Counted from the first letter of the stretch, positions 4,611 through 20,448 are shown. The stretch is 20,448 nucleotides of DNA from Selaginella moellendorffii (GCF_000143415.4 NW_003314327.1:1070241-1090688); one strand, 5' to 3'. Notes: generated from the letters alone by a model not told the origin. Program-made: numbers and translations.

Positions 4611-4785
4611 TGTGAGGGCCAAGTGTACGGCTACGATGCCGTATACTAATATTAGAGTAGTGGGATTTTGGTAGCCGTCGGATTGGTTTCAATCCGGACC
4701 ACTCGCTCCTGTATATAAGCTAGGGTTTTTGGGCTAATTGATATGCACATTTCTGTATTCCTTTTCCATATTCCAGGCACTCACA
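4611..4785 (+). repeat. 5' LTR
   Basis: TG...CA ends; terminal inverted repeat TGTGAGGGCC vs TGTGAGTGCC (9/10); TATA-like tatataag near 4712; 6 mismatches in 175 nt relative to the 3' LTR. Confidence 0.97.
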
Positions 4786-4786
4786 T

Positions 4787-4802
4787 TGGTGGAGGTGAGG
4801 GG
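4787..4802 (+). promoter_or_regulatory. Primer-binding site, tRNA-Ala-like
   Basis: TGGTGGAGGTGAGGGG begins 1 nt after the LTR. It is complementary to a tRNA 3' end ...CUCCACCA, typical of tRNA-Ala (expected about TGGTGGAGATGCGGGG). Confidence 0.75.
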
Positions 4803-5018
4803 CACCTTTGATTGTCCCTGAGGAGTGCTTGGATTTGGGATTTCGGTTTAGATCTAGCTTTTGCATCATCTAGATCTAGCTTTTTCCATTTCCTTTTTCT
4901 TATTCTTTCTTTTCAGGATTTTGGTTTAGATCTAGCTTTTTGCATTGTCTAGATCTACCACTTCCTTCCAACTTTTTATCATTTCTCTTCTTTTGCTCTT
5001 TCTTTTTCATTCATTTTC

Positions 5019-5951
5019 ATGGTAGATCAGCATTCTCCTCCCTTGACTCTAGAGCAGTAGTTGGTTCAATTGCTTGATGCTATGTGCTTGCAATTGAACA
5101 ACCAAAATCAATTGATGGCGGCATTCATGGCACATGGTCCAACTTCTCCTGCTCTTGGTGCCAATCCTTGCATTCGGCCAGAGTTCTTTCATAGGAATCC
5201 TGGGGATGATGTGTACCATTGGTTTGATCACTTCACGGTGATTGCCACATATCATTCTTGGGATGATGCTCGACATTTGCGTGAATTCCCCACGTGTCTC
5301 CAAGGGACGGCGTTGCAGTGGTACAATGGATTGAGCGCAGCCACTCGTGGCGATTGGAGTGTTCTTCCGGACATCTTCAAACGCGCCTTCGGACATGCCG
5401 ACGATTGTGATGATGCCTTCCAACAATTGCATCGTCTTCGCCAAGGGCCATCTGAGTCGGTGATGCAATTTGGTGTTCGTTTCCGAAGTCTTTTGCTTCA
5501 TGCAGAGCCCAATATGTCGGAGTGGATCAAGCTAGGAATGTTGTGGTTAGCACTTCATCAAGATCTTGTCGGACTTGTGCATGCATTTGCTCCTGCCACC
5601 CTTGACGATGTTCTTTGCTTGGCACAACGTTATGAGACATCGCCTCTTCCACTTCTCGCTCCACGTCCTTCAGCTCCACTTCCTATGAGTGATGGTCCTG
5701 TTCTAATAGAGGTTGATGCTGCTGCTACTTGAGTCCAAAGACAAGGGCAAAGCTGTGGTCGTGGCCGTGATGTTTGTTGCTAGGCGTGTGATGAAGTTGG
5801 TCATACTTATTGGCGTTGTCGGCGCTTTCCGGATTGGCAACCTCCATTTCCTGGGTGGAGACCTTGGCGTTAGCAACGTCCCATTGGTGCTACTGCGGTG
5901 GAAGGTTTGGACACCGAGGTGCATCCGGGAAATGAGGAGTCACGCAAGTAA
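5019..5951 (+). pseudogene. gag: Retrotransposon gag with CCHC zinc knuckle, interrupted by stops
   Basis: ATG at 5019 is in frame with the 5061-5732 ORF (capsid-like ...LQGTALQWY...LRQGPSESVMQFGVRFRSL). The frame continues through stops at 5058, 5730, 5781 and 5871 and includes C*ACDEVGHTYWRC (CX2CX4HX4C); it ends at TAA 5949-5951. Confidence 0.9.
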
Positions 5952-5988
5952 CGGAGGGACTTTGCGCAAATAAGTTAGTGACCCCTCC
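5927..5988 (+). promoter_or_regulatory. Decayed -1 programmed ribosomal frameshift signal (slippery heptamer plus putative pseudoknot)
   Basis: G GGA AAT in the gag frame; pol lies in the -1 frame. Downstream, cgcaag (5943-5948) pairs with tttgcg (5961-5966) and ggaggg (5953-5958) pairs with ccctcc (5983-5988). Confidence 0.65.
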
Positions 5989-8900
5989 ATCTTTCTTTCG
6001 GAAGTATCATCAAGGGGTTCACTCGACACCAGTTCATCCAGTGTTTACTTTCCAAGCTTGTTTTTATAACAAGAGGTCTCCTATTCTTCTCGCCGTGTTG
6101 GTTGATACAGGTTCGAGTTTATCTTCTGTTGCTCGACCTGTTGCCACACGTTGTCGTCTACACTTGCGTCATGCGGCGAATCCAGTTTTCATTCTTTATG
6201 GCAACGGCCGTACACATGCATGTGCACGAGATGAGGCAGACCTGGTTGTGCGTGTGGGCGATCTCGAGCTTGAGTTGTAGTTGTTGCGGGTGGTGCCAAC
6301 TCAAGCTTTTGACCTCATTCTTGGTATGGATTGGTTGTAGCGCAATCATGCCAAATGTAACTTTGAGGCTTCTCCCCCTTGTCTCATACTTCCTTATGTT
6401 TCATCCATTCCTCTCACTTCCGTACCTCTTCATCCCTCTACTTCTACCTCTACTTCTATTACTTTTGTTCCCCCATTATTTTCTCTTGTGTTTCCATCTT
6501 ATTCTGCTCTTACCCTTTTCGATCCCTCCGATGATCTTTGTGTTGCAGCTGTTGACCGACTCATGAAGGAGTATTCTGATCTCTTTGAATTTGACCTATC
6601 ATCTGGGGCCAAGATTGCCACACGTCATCCCATTCCAACTGGGGATGCTCGTCCAATCAAGGTTCCTGTTCGTTGTCGGTCACCCAAGGAGATTAAGATT
6701 TTACATGCAAACGTCAAGGAGATGTTGGAGAAGAGTGTTATTCGGAAGTCGCGAAGTCCTTGGGCATCTGAACCTCATCTTGTGATGAAGCCTGATGGGA
6801 GTATTCGTTTCTGCATTGATTATCGTCCATTAAATGAAGTGACGATCCCGGATGTGTACCCTCTTCCTCACACTGCTGATCTCTTGGATCGTCTAGGGCG
6901 AAGCCGTTGGTTCACCAAGCTAGATCTTGCTTCTGGGTATTGGCAAGTACCGATGGCCGACGAAGATATTCCTAAGACTGCTTTTCGTACACTATTTGGT
7001 TTGTACAAGTTCTTGGTGATGCCATTTGGTTTGAACAATGCTCCAGCAACTTTCCAGCGGATGATGGACAAGGTTCTTTGTGATATGCCAGAAGTGACTG
7101 CTAACTTCATTGATGATGTCTTGATTCACTCGGAGGGGATGTGGGTGGAGCACATTCGTGATGTGTGTAAAGTGTTGGATCGGCTACGGGATTAAAGCTG
7201 AAGAAGTCAAAGTGCATGTTTGGGTCCAAGGACACAACTTATCTTGGGTACCGTATTTCTCGTAAGGGTTTGTAAATTGATCCTGACAAACTTGTAGCCG
7301 TTTTAAAGTTCCCTACTTCGAAGTGTGTGAATGATATGCAGCGCTTCTTGGGCAAGGTGCAGTATCTCGGTCGTTTTGTGGATCATCTTTCTGATTGCAC
7401 TACACCATTGCGAGCGTTGTTGAAGTCATCAACATCATCTTTCATCTGGTCTTCAGATTGTGAGCGGGCATTTGTGGATCTCAAAGAGCTTTTGACGACT
7501 CCTCCGGTTTTGGCATATCCTGACTACACTCAACTTTTTATTTTGCGCGTTAATGCTTCTGATATTGGTCTTGGAGGTGTGTTGATGCAGGAGAGCCCAA
7601 GTGTGCCTGGTCAGTGTCATCCCATTATATATATAAGCCGTACATTACAACTAGCAGAGGTGAACTACTCCACGACAGAGAAGGAGTGTTTAGCGGCAGT
7701 TTGGGGTTTCGAGAAACTTCATGCATATCTACATGGTTCTCGAACGTTACTTGAAGGTGACCATGCTGCCGTTATTTCATTATTGAAGCGGAAGAACCTG
7801 ATTGGTCGTATTGCTCAGTGGGCTTTAAAGTTTCAGATATATGATTTTGATGTTATTCATTGCCCAGGGAGTTCTATGGCTGATGCTGATGCCCTTTCTC
7901 GAGCTCCTCTTCCTTCTCCACTCTCTTCTCATGTTTCTGATGAGCCTGTTGTTGCAGCATCTGTGGATTTTCTAGACAAGGATTTTGTGCCGTCGGCGGT
8001 TGTTGTACTTGATGTTCAGTGTCCACAAGGCGTAGAGCAAGATCTACCTTCTCTAGATGAGGTTCGCGAGGCTCAAAAGATTGAGCCGTGGATTCGAAAG
8101 CTTCGAGATGTGTTTGAGGATCCTGCATCACTTGCTGATGACTTGCCTTTCCGGCATTTACATTCTCAATATCACCTTGAAGATGGCCTTCTTTATTTTG
8201 TGGGGATGGATCATGATGATCATTTACGGCTGGTGGTGCCTTCTGTTTTTATTCCGCGGTTTCTCCATGCCTACCATGATTCTCCTGTTCTAGGTGGGTA
8301 TATGGGACATCGTCGTATGACTGAGAAGCTGCACAGATCTTTCTATTAGCCAGAGATGTGACGTGATGTTATCCGGTATGTGCGTAACTGCGTTTGGTGC
8401 CAAGCTCGTAATATTCCCCCTTGTGCTATGGAAGGACGGTTGGAGTCAATTGCAATTTCCCATCCATTTGAGTTGGTGGCGTTTGATCTTATGGGACCTT
8501 TTCTACGGTCAACTGCTGGCAATGAGTATGTTATTATTATTTCTGACTACTTGACTCGTTGGGTGGAAGTTGGTGCTCTTGCTAGCGCCTCTGCAACTGC
8601 TGTTGGATACTTTCTCCTCAATTGAGTGGTGTTCCAACATTTTTGTCCAGAGCAGATTCTTTCGGATAATGGTCCTGCATTTATGGCTGAGGTATTTCAT
8701 GTTTTGATGTCTCGGTTGGGGATATGCCACACTTTTACGAGTGCTTATTATCCACAATCAGACGGTCTGGTGGAACGGCTCATTCAGACATTCAAAGGGA
8801 TGATTGCGAAGTATGTGAACTTTCAGCATTCGGATTGGGATGGTTGTTTGCCGTCTCTTCGGTATGCCTATGTCACAGGAATGCAAAGTTCTATTGGTGC

Positions 8901-9394
8901 TTCACCATATAAACTTCTATATGGTCATGATCCAATATTACCAACGGAGCTGGGTTTACCTTCGCGATTGCCACGAGCTCCTGATGCTAGGTCATGGGAT
9001 CAATATTTGACAAGCATTCTTCCACTTGGCCGAACACTTAGGCCGCGTACAAGTGGGACAACAACGGCGCTACAACTCCCATCATCATCCATCTGCAGAG
9101 TACAAAGTGGATGATTTGGTGTTAGTTCGTTTTCCCCATCTTACGGTACGTGGTTTATCTAAGGGGATCCTTGCACAATGGAAAGGACCATATCGGGTGT
9201 TGCAGCAAGTTGGACCACAAGTTTATGAGGTTTGGCATGACATCCAGCAAGCCGATCCTCCGGAGATTGTGCATGTGCAGCAGTTGAAACGCTTTATACA
9301 AAGGGATCAGGAGCAATTAATGCCGTCTATAGATTCGTTGATGCCTCCTCCTGACGTTCCTCCAGATCCCGGCCCATCTACAAGAGAACCCTAA
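5936..9394 (+). pseudogene. pol: Retrotransposon pol (protease, RT, RNase H, integrase) with stops and frameshifts
   Basis: Protease VLVDTGSS and DLILGMDWL; RT SPWAS, RFCIDYRPLN, KLDLASGYWQV, MPFGLNNAPATFQ, FIDDVLI; RNase H NAS(DAS)..GLGGVL, YSTTEKE, ADALSR; integrase zinc-finger region, FDLMGP, SDNGPAF, YYPQSDGLVER, WKGPYRV. Frameshifts near 7192 and 9026. Confidence 0.95.
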
Positions 9395-9411
9395 TAGCCT
9401 TCCATTATTCC

Positions 9412-9426
9412 GAGAGGAGGGGATGA
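9412..9426 (+). promoter_or_regulatory. Polypurine tract
   Basis: gagaggaggggatga immediately before the 3' LTR. Confidence 0.9.
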
Positions 9427-9601
9427 TGTGAGGGCCAAGTGTACGGCTACGATGCCATATACTAATATTAGCGTAGTGGGATTTTGGTAGCCGTCGGATT
9501 GGTTTCAATCCGGACCACTCGCTCCTGTATATAAGCTAAGGTTTTTGGGCTAATTGATATACACATTTCTGTATTCCCTTTCCATATTCCAGACACTCAC
9601 A
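9427..9601 (+). repeat. 3' LTR
   Basis: Direct repeat of 4611-4785, 169/175 identical. Confidence 0.97.
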
Positions 9602-10228: not shown

Positions 10229-10385
10229 CTCCGGCCAAGGGGCCTCTGTTCTTAAGAGTAGTTAGATCTTTTCTCAAGTCTTGGAACGAATCTATAAGAA
10301 ATTTTCTAGATATTTAATCAATCAGTCCTCGTTTGGCTTCCAAAAAAATGCAAACATAAGAGAAAACACGTCCTCATACCATAAG

Positions 10386-10550
10386 CTACTCTTCCTCTGC
10401 GATTGTCCCCTTCTCACTCACGTAGATACCATCCAAGGACTTCCTGATGTCCTTGTTCTTCACATGGCATTTCTGGCAGCAAAAAAAGAAGAAACATCAC
10501 CATGAGATAGATATAAAAAACTCATCTCACACCTGTTGATGAGAGCAGCG
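10386..10550 (-). pseudogene. RPL9: 60S ribosomal protein L9 (uL6) 3' fragment: end of penultimate exon, 60-nt intron, complete last exon
   Basis: Last exon 10472-10386 translates [28 protein letters not shown] (plant uL6 C-terminus [20 protein letters not shown]...EE). It is preceded by a GT-AG intron at 10532-10473 and by AALIN (uL6 SAALINQ). Confidence 0.9.
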
Positions 10551-10840
10551 ATCCTCATGGCGTGCAACCATGGCGAAATGCCAAAATATGTAATTTCTGG
10601 CAGCAAAAAAAGAAGAAACATCACCATGAGATACATCTAAAAACCTCATCTCATACCTGTTGATGAGAGCAGCGAACCTCATGGCATGCAACCATGGTGA
10701 AATGCCAAAATACGTAATTTCTGGCAGCAAAAAAAGAAGAAACATCACCACGAGATAGATCTAAAAAACTCATCTCATACCTGTTGATGAAAGCAGCGAA
10801 CCTCATGGCATGGAACCGTGGTGAAATGCCAAAATACGTA
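10469..10840. repeat. Three-copy 124-bp tandem repeat
   Basis: The unit atttctggcagcaaaaaaagaagaaacatcacc...gccaaaata(t/c)gta starts at 10469, 10593 and 10717. Confidence 0.95.
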
Positions 10841-11009
10841 AGCGCTCCCGGAAAATCCTGGAAAAATGCTTCAAAAAAAACTGGTTTACCTACAAAAAAA
10901 CGTTCCTCCTCTCAACTGTTTTTTTCCCATGTGTCTTTATCTCCACCATTAAACTCAAAAAGAGTCTCGATTGAATATGTTGCCTTTGCTCTTTTAAATA
11001 TACAAGGAT
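10793..11009. repeat. Dispersed repeat module, copy B (homologous to 704-953)
   Basis: Same blocks and same orientation as copy A, about 10 kb downstream. Confidence 0.9.
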
Positions 11010-11198
11010 AAATACAAAATTAATCTAAATAAATAAAAACCATTAGATAAATATCCCAAAATATCCATGAATGTTCTTGGTATATTCACTGCCACTCCAG
11101 TCCCATACAGATTTGCTTAAGCAAACCAAAAATACTATTAAAATTCCCATAAAACAACATTTATATAGTTTAAAGTGTCCTATAATCATATTAAAAAG

Positions 11199-13670
11199 TG
11201 TGACTTAAACTGCTAAACCACTAAATAAACATGCACACCCCGTCCTTGGGGAGGCAGCAGACCAATATTGTGGGTTGGTTCTTGAATCTGAAAGCCAAGG
11301 AGCTGCTGTTGGAATCACCCTGCGCTGAGAAGGCTGCAGTGTCAGGATTTAGGTTCCTATGTTGCCGGGGTGCGAGTGTGGCCAATGGAAGGGCAGCACA
11401 TAGAGATTGATCTGACCCCTGAGAAGTTGTCTCAAGTGACAATCTTGGGAGTTGGGAAGGGAAGAAGTAGATGTCATGGGGAGGCTCGAGAGATGGAAAA
11501 GAAACCAGGAGGGAGAGGAGCAGTTGAGTGGGGACGTGATTAGGATGTGGGCCGTAGTTTCTGGTTTAATGCTAGGTTGCACGTGGACCGATGGAGCTGA
11601 GGTGAATTATGACTACGCTGAACTACCCAAACCCAGACTAAAATGCACGCACCTGGCATTTCGACCCTATCACTCAGACAATCCTCCAGGCGGAGATCGA
11701 GCAGGAGCTGAAGTTGACGACATGGACCTATGATACGAGATCCATGGCAAATGTGGCAGCGGACAGAAGCCAAAATTGTTGAGATCATTGAGCAGCAAGA
11801 AAGGGAGATTTGAAAGTTGGAGCAAAGGGACAAGGGAGGTTTCCCAAAAGACATCCTGCTAAAGAAGGAGAGCACGGAGCTTTGGCAGGTAATCCAGATG
11901 CTGAATGGTGAACCTTCACAGTGCCGTTGCCCAAGTATAAACAGCGGGCCCTCCAGATGGAACTGGTTGCCTTGGAAGCATGGGCTGTGAAGGTTCACTT
12001 ACAAAAGGAGAAGGAGGAGCTCCTGGAAGTCCAGAAATTGATTAAAAGTTGGAACAAGGAGGATGAGGCCATGATGAGACTGCTAGGGGGCAACTAGTAG
12101 TGGGGCAGACAGAGTTGGAGGTCGGCAGGCTTGACCGTGAAGCTTCAAGAGGAAAAGGAGAAGGTTGCTGCCTTCAGTAAAGGGGCCTTGGAGGCAGAAG
12201 TTATAATAAAGTTCCAGCATCAGAAGGAATTCTCTGCAATGCTGAGAGAACATGTAAAGGAGCTACAGGCGGAAGAGTGGGAGGGGAAAATTTGGGAGAC
12301 TCATGTATGAGTCAGGGCCTACAGAAGCTTGTTGTCATTGCTCCCATTGTGTTCAGATCTTAATATCTACGCAGAAAAGCTCTTGTTCTAGTATATGGCC
12401 TTCGTGCTGCACGCCATCTTCAGTCTCGTGAAGTAGGTCATCCATCTTTTGAGGGGGGGACGGAATTGGTGGAAACTTAAGGTGCGTTTTGTATTCCTTC
12501 ACCATCAATTCAATCTTCCCTCTGACGTTCTCTATCGCAGCGGATTTTGACACGCCATATCCAACGCAGGGAATGTCCCCAGGTACGGCCACATACTCAC
12601 TTCTAAGTTTTCCGTTTTGTTTGTCTTGGTATTTGTAAACCTGATGTAAGAAAAACAAATGCCAAAATCTTGAAGCTTGGAAAGGCACCTTGCCCCAGTA
12701 CTGGAAAATGAGTTGCTTTCTCCTGCTCCTACGGTCAGGGACCATGCGATTAACATTCCTGCGACCGCTCGAAGCCATGTGTATGTGGGGTTAGGGTAGA
12801 ACCGTGCTAATTCAAGAAGGCAAATCGGCAAGATATGAATGGATTCCTTGCATGCTCTCCTTGACCATGGATTAGAACTATTTGGATCCCGCCCTGTCAG
12901 GATTAAGTTTCCTTCGTGCTCCATTTTTATTAAATAGGCTTTAAAGTTCTCCCATGTGTCCATTAAAGGTCTCGTCCAAGAATTCCTAAGCACTTAGAAG
13001 AGAGGCTGCTCGTAAGTGGAAGTTAACGTTGTAGCAGCCCAAATTAATCAGTAGCAGATAAAGACAAGGGCTTGGTTTGAAGGGGAGCTTGTTAGGCGTC
13101 AGCTTTGACCACGTGGTCAACATCGGTCAAAAGGAAGCTCAAAGGTATATTAAGGTATGTCAGGATAAGGGATCTAGGGCTCACAGTGGAGACACTGCAC
13201 ATGAGAGCTTTTGAAGTAACTCGGGGGTGGTTAAGTGGTGAAGAACCTGAAGAGGAGGGTAACATAGTCTAGGAAGACTAGATCTCTGTTTTTTTGTGCC
13301 AGATCATAATAGAGATTGACTTAGAAGTGAAAGCCTTAATTACCTCACCATGTTATGATCCAATGGTTTATCCTATTCTTTCTAAATGAAAATGATGGTT
13401 ACTCCCCAGAGTTAGAATATACAAATAATTTAGCCTTGAAAAGAACTAAGATCAGTAGTGTTAATTCACTTGATTAGCCATGTTAGGTGAGCTCTAGGGC
13501 ACAACCTCACCCAACATGCCTGGCCGTTCTAAGACCACTACAATGTGCTCGCCCTACCTGGGAACTCTTTCATGGGCTGGCCGATGCCAGTTAAGTTGAT
13601 TGCATTGTTGAGGCTGCTGAGATTATTATTATTATTATTATTATACATGAGATTGTTTTAGGTCGTCACA
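11199..13670 (+). mobile_element. Probable transposon remnant carrying a degenerate E/K-rich coiled-coil ORF, interrupted by an unrelated ~0.7-kb segment
   Basis: Intronless, purine-rich, CpG-poor + strand coding-like sequence with many stops and shifts (about 11250-12350, e.g. IVEIIEQQEREI*KLEQ and KEKEELLEVQKLIK) resumes with similar composition at about 13070-13270. It is bounded by TGTGAC (11199) and GTCACA (13670). No gag, pol or transposase motif was recognised, so both class and boundaries are uncertain. Confidence 0.35.
12353..12778 (-). CDS. Small HicB-fold-like protein; probably 2 exons (12778-12689, 12640-12353; about 125 aa spliced)
   Basis: Open ATG-to-TGA frame with an in-frame 48-nt AAG|GT...TTTTTCTTACATCAG| intron-like segment. 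The spliced core FQYWGKVYKY...SEYVAVPGDIPCVGYGVSKSAAIENVRGKIELMVKEYKTHLKFPPIPS matches the recalled HicB N-domain pattern Y.V........Y.V.FPDLPGC.T.G.T.EEA..NAREAL...L.......PIP.PS. Confidence 0.6.
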   Translation of the reverse strand: MASSGRRNVNRMVPDRRSRRKQLIFQYWGKVPFQASRFWHLFFLHQVYKYQDKQNGKLRSEYVAVPGDIPCVGYGVSKSAAIENVRGKIELMVKEYKTHLKFPPIPSPPQKMDDLLHETEDGVQHEGHILEQELFCVDIKI

Positions 13671-14296
13671 TGTGGCATTACTAGAACAGTACAAGAAATC
13701 CTCTCATTGAGCTATCGATTGAGCTCGGGCGCTGGGATGGGAGGAGCAGCGAGGAGGGAGGAGATCGAGCTGTTACGGGAGTGCTGTGCGAGAATCTGCA
13801 AAATCCTGTGAGAACTTGAAGATCTGGAATCACAAAACCCTAGCACACTGCAATGCATTCGCCCTGCACTGTAGCTCCACACAATCGCTCAGAGCTCCCA
13901 AGACCCCTGAATATAATAGATTACTTTCTCCAACAGAATTCTTGTGGGCAAGCAAAGCTGGTTCTGGTAAAAGAATATTTCAGGATTTCTTATACCATAG
14001 TATGATTGATTTCCATGAATATCAGTGCTTTGCTTTACACTCTCAGCCCAGCGTAAATGTGGAAGCAGTATATGAAACTGCTCCGAGAGTTCTTCCTGGG
14101 ATTGGATTGAAAACTCTAGTATTGGGTGTGAGCTCGGCTTAGTATTGAGTTCCACGAGATCAAGCATTGGCTTACCATCTTATCAAACATGGCCTAATTC
14201 ATAGCCTGGCTCTCGCCCGTTAAGTTAATCGGATTGTTGAGAGCCGTCCAATCAAGAAAATTATATATGATAATTTTTTAGGTTTTCTTATGTGGC
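13571..14296. repeat. Diverged ~100-bp direct repeat pair (13571-13676 and 14200-14296); first copy contains an (ATT)n microsatellite
   Basis: gccagttaagttgattgcattgttgag vs gcccgttaagttaatcggattgttgag; ttatacatgagattgttttaggtcgtcacatgtggc vs ttatatatgataattttttaggttttcttatgtggc. Confidence 0.65.
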
Positions 14297-15389
14297 GGTA
14301 TTGTTCTCCAAAACAGTATATGTGCCGCATGTCACTGTCTTAACAGAGCTTAGGCTAACCCGTGAAGGCCAGTCAAGGGCATGTGCATGCTCATGACCCC
14401 CAGAATGCACTTGCTGGGCTTGTGCCCGGCTTGCCCATTCTGGGAGTAACAGGCTAGCACAGTTCTTTAACCTCTTCTTCACAAATATGTTCACAAAAAC
14501 ACCAACTATTTAGAAAGAAAAAATAGAGATGGCATGCATCCATAATGTTGAATACCACAGCAGTGCCATCATCCTGGCCTTACCACAAAACAATCAGTGT
14601 CATGCACTCTTATTACCAATGCCAACACGTATGAAACACCATGGCCCTGGCAATGCATTCCCAAGAGGCCTGCAAAGATTTCTAAAACAATCATGTGGAA
14701 AGGAACCTTAATCTACTTCGTAACAGATGACACTTTTCCACCGAGTTGATATTTCCCCTCTTTCTTTGGAATTCAGAATATTTTCTTTGTCTGATCAATA
14801 AAGAAAATCCAGAGAACCTGAGTCTTGGTGGTGGGCAAGTTTGATTAAAGCCGTTGATATCACTGACACGATATTTTCATCTTCTTGGAATTGTAGACCA
14901 CATTGCCGGCCCCAGCCCCGTGTCCACATTCTCTATACCACGGTTCACTGCATCTGGCGAAAAGGGGAAAAAAAAAAAAAATGAAAAGCATTTGGATTTC
15001 ATCAATCGTAAGAACTCATAGTCTGGTTCAATTCTATATCTTATATGTATTTGTAGCAGCTCATGTAGGTTCTTCTTTCAGTTGCATGCTTACATATCGT
15101 CTCGCTGAAAGCAGAGATGCTGATGATGAGAGACATGGCGACAGCAAAAGACCCCGCTGTGCCCAAGCAGTCTCCTGAGTTCTGTTCTTTCTAACTCTCC
15201 TTGTGGCAAGTGGACAGGCTCGTAAATCTACACTGCGTTTCTGTTTCCGGTGTTCAATTTTCTCAGATTCAGCATATGTTCAGAATAGAATCGGTCAGTC
15301 AGAATGATCCCTAAAGTCGATTGGCTGGAAGTAATAGAGTCGATAAATTTTTACAAACGAGAACAGGATCACTTAGCACGAGATCTCCT

Positions 15390-15698
15390 TCATTGAAATC
15401 CGGCAGACACCTTCAATGGTGTGAGAACTTCTCCAAGACATTTCAGCCGCACTTCTATAGATTGATCCATATCCAGCTCGAGGAAAAACTATTGAACATC
15501 GGAAGAAGCATGGAACAATGTAGAAAAGCGTAGAACAACCACATGTGACCCGGATGGTGAACTTTCAAACAGAACGAATATCCGATCTTCTCTCATGACA
15601 CAGACAACATCGTCATCAACTCTGATTACTTTCCCTATGGTGTGTTCCTTCGACCACCTGGACTTTAAAATTCGTCTGGCTTCTGCAGCAATATCCAA
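15390..15698 (-). pseudogene. Unidentified spliced coding remnant or small gene, divergent from the GEX3-like gene
   Basis: (L)DIAAEARRILKSRWSKEHTIGKVIRVDDDVVCVMREDRIFVLFESSPSGSH, a 54-nt GT-AG intron (15542-15489), then FFLELDMDQSIEVRLKCLGEVLTPLKVSAGFQ*. No clear initiating ATG; family not recognised. Confidence 0.35.
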
Positions 15699-15862
15699 GG
15701 GGTAAAAAAAAGAAGACTGGTGAAGCAATCAAAGAGCTCAATGTGGTTTGGTCGAGAGGTGAAGGCTTCAAATTGGATGGAGTAAGATGCGAAACTTCTT
15801 TATAAATTTAGTTGAAGGATAAAGTTTCTTTTTTCTTCTATGTATATTCTGACGAGTTTCTT

Positions 15863-15959
15863 TCTCCTTTGATATTTTCTTTTGTGTCTAGGTTCGTGAC
15901 AGAATGTTCAGGAGCACAAACCTAGACACAAAAGAAATTGTGATCAAATTAAAAGGAGA
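15863..15959. repeat. Inverted repeat/hairpin upstream of the GEX3-like gene
   Basis: Perfect 19-bp arms tttcttttgtgtctaggtt (15876-15894) and aacctagacacaaaagaaa (15919-15937), extending imperfectly inward (gtg/cac) and outward (tctcctt/aaggaga). Confidence 0.9.
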
Positions 15960-16078
15960 TTATTATAGATCAGTCTCATTCTTTCTTCTTTCATTTAAAA
16001 TTTTAGTTTTCGTCCACTCCACTTTTTGGATTTTTTTCTTCTAAGGAATGCATGTAACAACTCATTAGGGTTCTTGGG

Positions 16079-18409
16079 ATGGGGAAAGCTTGGATTTTTA
16101 TGATTATGTTGGTTGGTTTCACACGTAGGTATTTCCTCCGAGAGGGCAAAAGTTGAAGAATGCTCTTTGAATTGTTTCCAGGTGCCATTTTACAGATGGA
16201 AAATTGGACAGACATCAACCGTATTTTATCCATTTCTGGAGTTCCTACTATAGCAAGCGATGGGAGGATTTACATCTGTACTGGAAAGAACTTGATTTCT
16301 TATAATGAAGACATGTCTCTCAACTGGACTGCTTCACTAAGAAGTGGAACTTGCGAGCGCCATATTCCTCCTATCATTGACAGTGCTGGACGGGTACATT
16401 AAAACAAGATAATCTGATTATATTCATAGATCCTTCCAGGTTTATCTCGCAGCTCAAAACAATGTCCAGATAGTCACCCCTAAGCCATACTCCTATTCCA
16501 CCAAGAAGTACACTATCAGTTTCCTGTACAACTTTACAAGTCATGGCATTGGTTCAAAACCAGTTACTGGATTAGCAGCTTCTCAAACTGATGCAGCTAT
16601 CATGTTCTATGTGAATAGCGGAGTGGGAGGATTATATGCTGTAACTATTGAAGGCACACCCCGTTGGAGTTTGGGGGGCATTGTTAATAGTTCTGATTGG
16701 CAACAGTCGTCTTTCGATTTTTCAGATTTTTGTAGCAGCAATTCAAGTGTCTGCTACTTCCATTATTCCCCGGCGGTAGACATGTGCGATGGAAGTTTAT
16801 ATGTAAGCACTCTTTTGTCCCATATTAATTAGAGTAATCGTGCAAGGGTACATGGCAGATAGCACACTCGAATGGATGGTTATATGCGATTTCTGGCTGG
16901 CAGCCATTTATCAGATGGCGCTACAATTTTGGATTAAACAGGGAGGCCTCTGAAGCCGGTATAACAACTGGCAACAATGGGCTTGTCTATGCTGCAGTTG
17001 TAGCGCAAGAAATGGTGTACGCTTTTGATGCACAAACCGGTGATGTCTTTTGGAGAGTGAAGGTTGGACCACTGAGCGTTCTTACTTGTTTTCCACGGGT
17101 TGATCTCACAGGTATTTAACTAGTCCTAAAAAGAATTTCACACAACACATTTTGCAAAAGGGTGGGTTTTTATTGGATCCGTTGATGGCTGTTTGTATGC
17201 AATATCTCCCAATGGTCAAGAAGTTAAAAAATATCTGGAACTAGAGTCAAAAAGCTCAATTATACAAGCGCCGCCATATCTTGAATGCAATGGCGGGGCT
17301 TTGTACGTCGCACAAGTCCAGGTCACTTCCAAATATATTAGTTATGGTGCTAGGACACTTGTTTCTTACACCGACGCCTTGAGCGTTTTTGTCTCGCAAA
17401 TCGACCCTTTCACTGGAACCCTGTATCGAAGGCAGAATTTTCTTCCTGGTAAAGTGAGTTTGTAGTCCGTGAGAAAGTAATGTTGGCAACATTGATGCAG
17501 ATTTATCAACAAAGGGCGGATGTACTTTTGATTCTAGCTTAATTCTTGCCTTAGTAGCAGCAAGTAAATCAATCATATTCTTGTACTATTAGTTTGCCAT
17601 TACATTGTGCTACCTTGCAGGCGTTTCAACTTCTGGCCCGTGCAAAGCTGGAGGTAAGATATAGCTTTATCTAAATTTGATTAAAAATATATATATATAT
17701 CTCTAGAGCGTGCAACAGCCGCAACATGTGTTGGAAATCTGGCAATCCCCCAACTCCCAGGTCTGAATTAGACGTTTCCAACATTGAATTTATTTTCCTT
17801 CTCAACTTCAGATATGACCAATAAGAAGTTTAAAGAGTATTATATTAGCATACCGTCAGTATTTATAGGATTCATATTAGCTGTCATTTTCGTATTTACA
17901 TGGTGGAGCAGAAAGGTTCGTGTAGATAGAAAGAACGAACGAGACAAAAGACGGAAAGACATAGGGATGCCTCATGATAAGGTTTACTGTTATTGTTGGA
18001 TCTGGTTAGACCTCAGTTCTCTTTGTGTTTTTTTTTCAAACAGAGAAAACTCGTCAAGCACAGAGCAGCACTGGAGAGAGAGGCAGCACACCTTCGAGGC
18101 AAGTATTTAGAGTGCCCGTCGAAACAAATTGAAGATCGATTGTTTGAGGCACTCAGTCAGCTCAATTTTCTCGACGTACTCATTTCTGATCAAGCTCATT
18201 CTAATGCCTCACTTCATGGTTTGCGAAGACGGCTTGAACTAAGCCCATTCTCACCTTACACTTCAGGCAGCAACAACTTAGCACTGTATCATCCATTGGA
18301 AGGCGACACTTCACTTGTGTCTCCGTCAAACGACCAAGAAGTGATCCCTACTGATTTGACAACCATCAAGAAGGACAAAATTGCTAGCATGGTCGATGCA
18401 ACACCATGA
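16079..18409 (+). CDS. GEX3: GAMETE EXPRESSED 3 (GEX3)-like PQQ beta-propeller type I membrane protein, 10 exons, about 615 aa
   Basis: Exons 16079-16124, 16182-16393, 16440-16802, 16859-17111, 17161-17448, 17501-17563, 17621-17653, 17707-17760, 17812-17981 and 18044-18409 splice at GT-AG into one 1848-nt open frame. Signal peptide MGKAWIFMIMLVGFTRA. Motifs DGRIYIC, PAVDMCDGSLYI, TTGNNGLVY, FDAQTGDVFW..VGPL, GWVFIGSVDG.LYAISPNG and IIQAPPYLECNGGALYVAQ are collinear with recalled Arabidopsis GEX3. A TM helix (IPSVFIGFILAVIFVFTWW) is followed by a basic and coiled-coil tail. Confidence 0.88.
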
Positions 18410-18465
18410 TCAAATGCAACTTTTATATAAAGCATCAACATCACAGTTTCATTATGAGTAAAGAA

Positions 18466-19320
18466 TTAAGTTGCACTCCTCTCTAAAATACCAGCCTCAA
18501 GGCCAATGCTTGTCCGTTGGCAGCTGTCACCTCTTACTTTTATATTTCCAACTTTGTTGTTTAGCTGGCCAACGTTATTGTGTCGTTCAAGAAAATTTAC
18601 ACTCTTGTTTGATTTTGAACGTCGTCTCTCATATAGTGTTTCGGCGTAACTTTCGATAAAATTCAAACGCTTTGACTTCATGTCTATCTTGTAGCATTCT
18701 TTAGGGTTTTTATGTAGCATGACTTGCATCCTGCTGTCTTCTCTTTGAAATTCGTATCAGCTTGCCCAACATTAAGCTCGTTCAGCTTTTCAAACATTCT
18801 AAATACTTTAACAATTTCTCCTCCTAAAACGCCACATTTTTTCTTGCCAAAGCTGCACCTTCAAGGGCTGATTTAACGCCTGAATTGCATTACTGGACTT
18901 TGATATCCAGATTACTGGAAAAAAAAAACACAAAGAAGGAACTCTATTGATTTCAAATCATCTTGCATAGGCTACGTACCAGATCTCGCTAGCTATCTCA
19001 GAAGCAAAGTGGTCATTAGATCCTCCAAGCTTTCTAGTTATCTTTGTGAATTTAACTAATTGCCACTAGTGTTAAAATTTTCTACTTTCATCCGTTTTAT
19101 GGAAGCCTCCGCCACCCCTAGCCTTGCATCCACACTTTTGAAAGGTCATGTTAAAACTTTGGAAGCCAGCTTGATGCTGACAATGCAAGATCACCAGTGC
19201 TTGTTCTTAATTCCTCAACGGAGCACACCGGATTTAGTTGTCTAGCTTTTGAACTTTCCTCCCCATCTCTGTGCCTTCGAAAGAATATTTACTACATGGT
19301 TTAACTTTTCCTACCATTTC
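18466..19320 (-). pseudogene. Degraded, unidentified coding remnant (coiled-coil-like) convergent with the GEX3-like gene
   Basis: Minus-strand stretches DLFKSVDARLGVAEASIKRMKVENF and SALEGAALARKNVAF*EEKLLKYLECLKKLNEL are separated by a gtacgt...ttccag intron-like segment (about 18980-18915); several stops. Confidence 0.3.
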
Positions 19321-20448
19321 TTCTATTTTCATTACTACTAGCAAGGAATCCAACTCTGCTGGCTTGGACCAAAATAAGTCTTTGAAAACACTTTACTGGG
19401 ATAGAAAAGTTATAGCTAATAGTGCAACATAGAATAAATTAGTGTATATTGTATGCTTCTAAGATTTATCATGAGCATCTATAAAATCTATAAGAGTAAT
19501 TATAATCACAAAGCCTTTTATAAAAGAAATCAAGTTTACAAACAATTAATTTTCTTTTAATTTGTAATTATTTAAAAATAAATGAAAAAAAGATTAGCAG
19601 GGATTCCAGCAGAAAATAAAATCAGGGATCCCAGCTCTGATGGGAAGTAGATATAAAATTCTGTAAATGTAAAATAGTTTTCTGATATAAAAATATACTT
19701 TAATGATTCTGTAAATTAATATTTGTTCATTTTTGAGGTTCTAATATTTCCTGAACTTGTGTTACTTAAGTGGTTAATAGATTTAAACGTTTTTAGATTG
19801 TCATCGCTTACCCAGACAAGTTTTGATTGAAGCCAAGCAGGCATTGCAGCCTTGAAGCCTTGGAGGACTTGTACCTTCTATCGAGCACAATTGGTCTGTG
19901 CCATACCACCAAAAGTATCAGAAAGGCTTCTTAGTGTAGAAAATATTTTTAACAGCTAGAGAAATGCATGAATGACAACAGCATAGCCATGTCCTGCCCC
20001 ACCGAGGACATGACCACATGGCAAGTGCTCGACCTCAAGAACGAATCTTGACATATCCATTCATGCTCTTGCCATTTGAAACAGGTCCTTTAGCCCAACA
20101 TTCATGCTCCTAGCTGCATTCCTAGCTTTCTTACTGCTTAGATTCATGGTATCTAATGATACCATGCAGAGGAAGCCATGAGGTGCTGGTTTTTATCCTC
20201 TCAATGCTTCCAGAGTAGAGTTCCCTTGCAAAGCCCTACTTTCACAACATTGTTTTCTTTGGGGAAGAAGTATGTGGTCAAGGCAGCTCCCAGGATCAAA
20301 GAGTATCTCAGGGTTGAGTAATGGTAGGAAGTTCTAAGCAAGTTTTACTGCTCATTCAATCTGGAAGCCTGCTACTCATCGGGAGAAGGATTGGAAATCT
20401 AGGAGACACTATCTACTCCTAGAGAGGTCTCTGCTGGAACCAGCAATG

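Follow-up and report, generated by a model that had tools for sequence, protein, structure and literature searches.

In bacteria, archaea and phages, HicB covers the HicA toxin with its N-terminal domain, a degenerate RNase-H-like module of the order beta-beta-beta-alpha-beta. Structures of this domain include 6g1c and 6g26 from B. pseudomallei, 5yrz from S. pneumoniae, 4p78 from Y. pestis and 6hpb from E. coli and, to our knowledge, the parts of toxin-antitoxin systems are regarded as inventions of prokaryotes and phages. The HicAB systems are defined by a two-gene arrangement in which hicA is adjacent, and a C-terminal DNA-binding domain, of either the Xre-type helix-turn-helix (HTH) or the ribbon-helix-helix (RHH) kind, is frequent but not universal in HicB (PMC2701414). 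The locus studied here lies in a stretch of 20,448 nucleotides (nt) from Selaginella moellendorffii (GCF_000143415.4, NW_003314327.1:1070241-1090688), hereafter the window, whose positions are counted from its first letter. A sequence-only reading of the window had proposed an intact, intron-bearing gene for a HicB-type fold. This gene, SELMODRAFT_424390, is known only from S. moellendorffii; the gene itself had been annotated before, but its possible HicB nature had not. We estimate at roughly 0.5 the probability that it is a two-exon nuclear gene for a very divergent, stand-alone HicB N-terminal domain placed behind a basic and poorly modelled stretch.

Compared with the HicB N-terminal domain as represented by PF15919 (HicB_lk_antitox) and COG1598, the Selaginella protein has the same predicted order of elements (beta1-beta2-beta3-alpha1-...-beta4), and its VP-D-I-P-C..G...A.EN motif, its long amphipathic helix and the P.IPS that follows can be placed in one register. 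It differs in that its gene is eukaryotic, split by an intron and devoid of an adjacent hicA, and in that the protein lacks a C-terminal HTH or RHH domain. Moreover, its beta1-beta2 hairpin is 7 residues longer, the glycine of the PGC motif is missing, a basic N-terminal extension of 22 residues is added and the protein stays under every curated family threshold. The short bacterial proteins of 66-120 amino acids (aa) that belong to the HicB-like, UPF0150 (PF21748), HicB-like_2 (PF15970) and DUF1902 (PF08972) families share with it a similar size, a single domain and the lack of a DNA-binding domain, and are the nearest to it by ESM features and model shape. In contrast to the Selaginella protein, they are prokaryotic, they are usually encoded beside a HicA-type gene, and their similarity to it is not detectable by HMMER. 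The HicB of E. coli K-12 (b1438) has an alignable core (DIPEALTQG...EA...IPLPS, to compare with DIPCVGYG...AA...PPIPS in Selaginella), but hhalign finds no significant similarity to its narrow enterobacterial family (P 0.31). Unlike the Selaginella protein, that of E. coli has an HTH domain of the Xre type and is encoded in an operon with hicA (PMC2701414).

Gene structure and sister copy

An open reading frame (ORF) of 141 aa that begins with ATG extends without interruption over 12353..12778 on the minus strand, in agreement with the sequence-only reading. An ORF of such length is not in itself beyond chance, because one of 153 aa overlaps it in another frame (12532..12993). The 141-aa ORF contains a candidate intron of 48 nt at 12688..12641, in frame and free of stop codons, which reads GTGCCT...TTTTTCTTACATCAG and has a pyrimidine-rich tract and CAG on its 3' side. 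Once exon 1 (12778..12689) is joined to exon 2 (12640..12353), the translation is exactly the 125-aa protein SELMODRAFT_424390 (P0123, EFJ13823.1), which is encoded by the S. moellendorffii scaffold GL377631.1, identical to the window at 100%. The ORF and the intron model match an existing GenBank gene model, which is named 'hypothetical protein' and has no Pfam hit on record.

A word-index protein search retrieved a single relative, SELMODRAFT_410930 (P0001, 123 aa), which also comes from S. moellendorffii and belongs to the same 90% cluster as SELMODRAFT_424390. Its alignment with the ORF shows a gap of 16 residues exactly at the candidate intron. The studied gene is part of a duplicated (or allelic) block of 8.2 kb, at 11125..19337 with no strand assigned, which matches scaffold GL377578.1 collinearly, with an identity of 91-96%; past both ends of the block, the sequences of GL377631.1 and GL377578.1 are unrelated. 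When left unspliced, the sister copy meets a stop after 58 codons, and its 123-aa protein is obtained solely by splicing an intron of 49 nt. The intact two-exon gene and the plant-type 48-nt intron that had been proposed from the window alone are therefore backed both by the annotated models and by a second copy that needs splicing to keep its frame. The overlapping 153-aa ORF is lost in the sister copy and the two-exon ORF is retained.

Exon 1 (12689..12778, minus strand) holds codons 1-30 (MASSGRRNVNRMVPDRRSRRKQLIFQYWGK), that is, the basic N-terminal extension and the start of the predicted strand beta1. The extension includes a basic cluster, RRSRRK, at residues 16-21 (12716..12733, minus strand; RRSKKK in the sister copy), which is a possible nuclear localisation signal. 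The intron (12641..12688, minus strand) has GT..AG borders and is followed by exon 2 (12353..12640, minus strand), which holds codons 31-125 and the stop and encodes the remainder of beta1, followed by beta2, the DIPC..G motif, the helices alpha1 and alpha2 with PPIPS between them, and a final strand at the C-terminus. The removal of the intron had been said to restore the pattern Y.A.PGDIPCVGYG.SKSAAIENVR...PPIPS. The pattern is indeed present, but it lies entirely in exon 2, and splicing is relevant solely to the first predicted strand (YWGK joined to VYKY). The retention of CpGs in the ORF, also proposed earlier, is real but modest: the ratio of observed to expected CpGs is 0.80 in the ORF (18 CpGs) versus 0.20-0.55 in the flanks.

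The substitutions and indels that separate the window copy from the sister copy are unevenly distributed. The exons carry 2.5-3.3% substitutions and one in-frame indel of 6 nt, and thus fewer substitutions and no frame-breaking indels in comparison with the outer flanks, where 7.3% substitutions and 8 indels (5' flank) and 6.0% substitutions and 8 indels (farther 3' flank) are found. The intron has 2.1% substitutions and one indel of 1 nt, which is the sole frame-breaking indel between the two gene copies, and the first 300 nt of the 3' flank have 2.4% substitutions and one indel of 9 nt. This distribution fits a putative conserved transcription unit with a protected reading frame. A coiled-coil-like ORF (KLQEEKEKVAAFSKGALEAEVIIKFQHQKEF...) is also kept in both copies, at 12131-12310 on the plus strand of the window and at 10383-10643 on the minus strand of the sister locus (L001). 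Lying on the opposite strand, it runs towards the 3' end of the gene and may be the reason why the first 300 nt of the 3' flank are conserved at the level of the exons. In the sister locus only, a gene of 136 aa is annotated farther along the strand of this ORF.

Similarity to HicB N-terminal domains

The proposed assignment to HicB comes from two kinds of comparison. The first is a feature search of the ESM Atlas, which is database-wide and independent of the earlier proposal. All the nearest neighbours that it returned are HicB-type clusters (HicB_lk_antitox, UPF0150, HicB-like_2 and DUF1902). The whole protein scored 0.90, with 186 features in common, and residues 22-88 scored 0.87. According to the search's own calibration, such a similarity is a lead and not a proof.

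The second comparison relies on HicB profiles for which natural sequences were assembled: the HicB of E. coli K-12 with relatives from enterobacteria, six diverse phage HicB, and 115 short PF15919 proteins retrieved with the diverse phage HicB alignment, the full profile comprising 131 HicB N-terminal domains. Related HicB loci in viral contigs consisted of just close E. coli-type HicB genes and added no diversity. The searches used exon 2 or the database proteins P0123 and P0001, and the joined exons served only for the identity check and for the ratio of non-synonymous to synonymous substitution rates (dN/dS). The hhalign result strengthens steadily as the diversity of the HicB profile grows, from P 0.31 with 14 enterobacterial sequences to P 0.0044 with 7 diverse sequences and P 9.8e-5 (probability 58%) with 131 sequences, and 800 shuffles that preserve the composition all scored below the real protein. 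With the 131-sequence profile, HMMER gave 6.9 bits and E 4e-4 (Z=1, a single comparison), a score equalled by one shuffle out of 5000. In a ranking of 311 natural ORFs, taken in six frames from the window, from the sister locus and from an E. coli locus, the window ORF came best after E. coli HicB, with 6.4 bits compared with 4.3 for the next match, which is noise.

All methods, unguided MAFFT included, chose a single register. The core aligned to HicB by hmmsearch and hhalign spans residues 47-98 (12437..12592, minus strand; VAVPGDIP-CVGYGVSKSAAIENVRGKIELMVKEYKTHLKFPPIPSPPQKMDD). Six of the ten near-invariant columns of the family are kept (D52, P54, C55, G59, A65 and P88), while the glycine of PGC and three others are lost. 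In this register, YWGKVYKY would correspond to beta1 and EYVAVP to beta2, a helix of 21 residues follows, PPIPS stands opposite the IP.P of the family and the C-terminal FCVDIKI stands opposite beta4. The profile similarity to HicB appears weak but reproducible.

Predicted structure

An AlphaFold model computed with an alignment of 65 HicB proteins reached a predicted local distance difference test (pLDDT) score of 80.7 and, with this alignment as input, is compatible with the HicB fold without being independent support for it. Its predicted elements are strands at residues 24-38, 41-50 and 57-59, helices at 62-82 and 93-106 and a strand at 112-124; residues 1-20 have a pLDDT of 50-57. The acidic tail that the sequence-only reading had described does not stand apart in this model, where the region would form the helix alpha2 (93-106) and the strand beta4 (112-124) of the domain itself. 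The lack of a C-terminal HTH or RHH domain, which had also been noted, holds, as the protein ends at the predicted beta4. Foldseek placed the HicB structures 6g1c, 6g26, 5yrz, 4p7d and 6hpb on top, with template modelling (TM) scores of 0.4-0.6, and a shape search of the Atlas with the same model likewise had HicB clusters on top (TM 0.53-0.66).

Small beta-beta-beta-alpha modules are common, and the predicted fold could in principle be that of a eukaryotic alpha/beta family passed on by vertical descent, for example the alpha-beta-beta-beta-alpha domain that binds double-stranded RNA (dsRBD), one chain of which, 3adl, appears at Foldseek rank 26. Nevertheless, the TM score of 3adl is 0.30 over 53 columns, far under the HicB matches; none of the ESM neighbours is a dsRBD and no sequence match to a dsRBD was found. 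Among 1.84 billion proteins, phmmer detected no eukaryotic relative except a repeat-motif match (P0002, see below). We consider this explanation highly improbable.

Evidence against the proposed HicB assignment

A set of observations weighs against the HicB assignment and suits another explanation, namely that the gene is an orphan ORF restricted to its lineage, either born de novo or too decayed to be recognised, that has a HicB-like motif by chance and an ab initio gene model that is hardly or never expressed. Just two near-identical copies exist in one species, and unrelated ORFs of 150 aa arise by chance nearby. The database-wide sequence searches were blank. The ORF, exon 2 and the spliced proteins drew no match from NCBIfam, PADLOC or the PDB sequences, the precomputed Pfam annotation is blank for the Selaginella proteins, and these do not reach the normal threshold of the curated HicB family profile (PF15919 / COG1598). 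In PHROGs, phrog_497 ('HicB-like') and phrog_11958 match 65 of the 65 HicB proteins of the alignment and neither of the two Selaginella proteins. The search of phage and plasmid records by tBLASTn gave noise only, and phmmer against 1.84 billion representatives recovered the protein's own cluster and P0002, with no prokaryotic relative. A literature search found no paper that treats HicB or toxin-antitoxin genes of Selaginella, and none that mentions either locus tag.

Two of the matches were considered as links to HicB and rejected. The sole PHROGs match, phrog_19327 (E 0.11-0.15), is a family with no assigned function and is matched by no HicB protein, so that it provides no corroboration. 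P0002 is a secreted, membrane-anchored repeat protein of 614 aa (L090, 6105-7949) with at least 7 copies of DYWDPVFGYTDENGNIVEVDSLPPNIAAEQAAPIASP; it is encoded on a compact, eukaryote-like metagenome contig where its neighbours are GCN1-like and MAPEG genes. Its E-value of 1.4e-6 is the sum over six copies of one hairpin-like motif of 25 aa, similar to the hairpin that beta1 and beta2 form in the Selaginella protein, and the HicB profile does not match P0002.

The targeted comparisons have weak points of their own. The best hhalign shuffle scored 26.3, near the real 28.4, and, for real proteins, shuffling provides a lenient null. The sister copy scored near noise despite its few residue differences, with 5.3 bits (a score that 9 of 5000 shuffles equalled), an hhalign score of 19.5 and a probability of 6.6%. 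As for the structure, the confident model and its fold matches are circular, because the input alignment consisted of HicB proteins. From the single sequence, AlphaFold failed (pLDDT 41), although that model has strands at the later beta1, beta2 and beta4 positions, and the Foldseek E-values for the HicB structures are just 0.011-0.5. The proposal of a HicB fold therefore stands in part: the ESM neighbours, the targeted profiles (P about 1e-4 to 1e-2) and the single register with six of ten columns speak for it, whereas the database-wide profile searches (NCBIfam, PHROGs, PADLOC and precomputed Pfam) gave no HicB match, the sequence searches failed as well, and the top-ranked HicB structures depend on a model built on a HicB alignment.

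The two copies differ by 7 non-synonymous and 3 synonymous changes, which gives a dN/dS of 0.59 that is not significantly different from 1 (P 0.43), and conservation is as high in the intron and in the near 3' flank as in the exons. Two raw S. moellendorffii RNA-seq runs, about 12% of each being sampled, contained no reads over the gene or its splice joints (12688-12641), which is no proof of silence, yet offers no sign of expression. The earlier suggestion that the component had been repurposed, and was therefore functional, is unsupported on both counts. In the same two runs, 84 reads match only a piece of 33 nt at 12992-13024 and are unlike the sequence on both sides of it, which points to a short segment shared with a transcript expressed elsewhere and not to transcription at this place. 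Two contigs hold the gene, X1 in the form of the sister copy and X2 in that of the window copy; since both are unspliced, they are probably DNA. Finally, no HicA-like or phage-family ORF was found among the small ORFs around the gene.

Yet, an orphan ORF with a chance motif would not readily explain why the database-wide ESM features and the targeted profiles, which are independent methods, agree on both family and register. It is also difficult to reconcile with a frame that is kept in two copies whose only frame-breaking indel is intronic, and with the raised CpG content over the ORF. We regard it as possible, at clearly less than even odds.

Genomic context

The sequence-only reading had further suggested that the gene could be carried by a mobile element. 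It might then be a passenger or accessory gene of a transposon, a Helitron or a viral insertion that brought in a prokaryote-like module. Its location in an 8.2-kb block that is present twice, with unrelated sequence past both ends, agrees with such a passage, as does the presence of a Ty3/gypsy element 2.7 kb away. Nevertheless, the gene is outside the pair of long terminal repeats (LTRs; 4611-4785 and 9427-9601) of this element, and neither the gene nor the 8.2-kb block was found to be bordered by direct or inverted repeats, terminal ones included. The annotated copies that were found number just two, which fits the two haplotypes that the S. moellendorffii assembly reportedly contains according to its genome paper. 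Moreover, the block also carries an ordinary multi-exon beta-propeller gene, which adjoins the studied gene. Carriage by a mobile element thus seems improbable, and the earlier suggestion is not sustained.

The beta-propeller gene (about 16079-18409, plus strand) is PQQ-like and is annotated with 593 aa, faint PQQ_2 / beta-propeller Pfam matches and a predicted membrane segment. The model of its paralogous or allelic counterpart on GL377578.1 has just 500 aa, and the two annotations differ. The LTR retrotransposon occupies 4611-9601, and its LTRs, of at least 175 nt, are 97% identical. ORFs resembling gag, reverse transcriptase, RNase H and integrase are split over several frames at 5061-9394 (plus strand), and the Ty3/gypsy assignment was made by reading these translations, with no profile search. 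The retrotransposon is flanked by a pair of direct repeats of 116 nt that are 82% identical and about 10 kb apart (838-953 and 10894-11009). A tandem repeat of 124 nt at 10464-10835 (3 copies, 90-100% identical) is related to another of 55 nt at 706-816. At the beginning of the window, an ORF on the minus strand (1305-1745) contains HFHDCFV and GCDGSVLLDS, motifs that are hallmarks of class III plant peroxidases, and probably represents one exon or a piece of a peroxidase gene.

Origin and possible role

If SELMODRAFT_424390 does encode a divergent HicB N-terminal domain, the natural view, given that HicB-type domains are otherwise prokaryotic and viral, is that it came by horizontal transfer and acquired its intron later. 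The gene would then derive from a prokaryotic or phage HicB through an old horizontal transfer, and the intron would have been gained afterwards. Horizontal acquisition cannot be shown, however, because no prokaryotic relative is detectable. The protein, if made, would be a small protein-binding module whose sheet face and helix alpha1 might clamp a partner in the way HicB clamps HicA. Since the gene has no toxin gene nearby and the protein has no DNA-binding domain, a role as antitoxin and repressor is not expected. Given that no transcript was seen, the gene may equally be a silent relic.

Under a bolder version of the HicB interpretation, the gene would be an antitoxin that a land plant has domesticated: a toxin-less, intron-bearing HicB-like gene present in both haplotypes or copies, derived from an ancient bacterial or phage module and now acting as a eukaryotic protein-binding factor, possibly in the nucleus. 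We consider this rather unlikely. At present, the gene encodes an annotated hypothetical protein with a weak and remote similarity to HicB, and it should be seen as a testable lead and not as a result. If the lead proved true, a HicB-type domain fixed and intronised in the nuclear genome of a plant would represent a rare case of domestication, and it would offer a way to learn how a HicB domain works on its own, when its toxin is absent.

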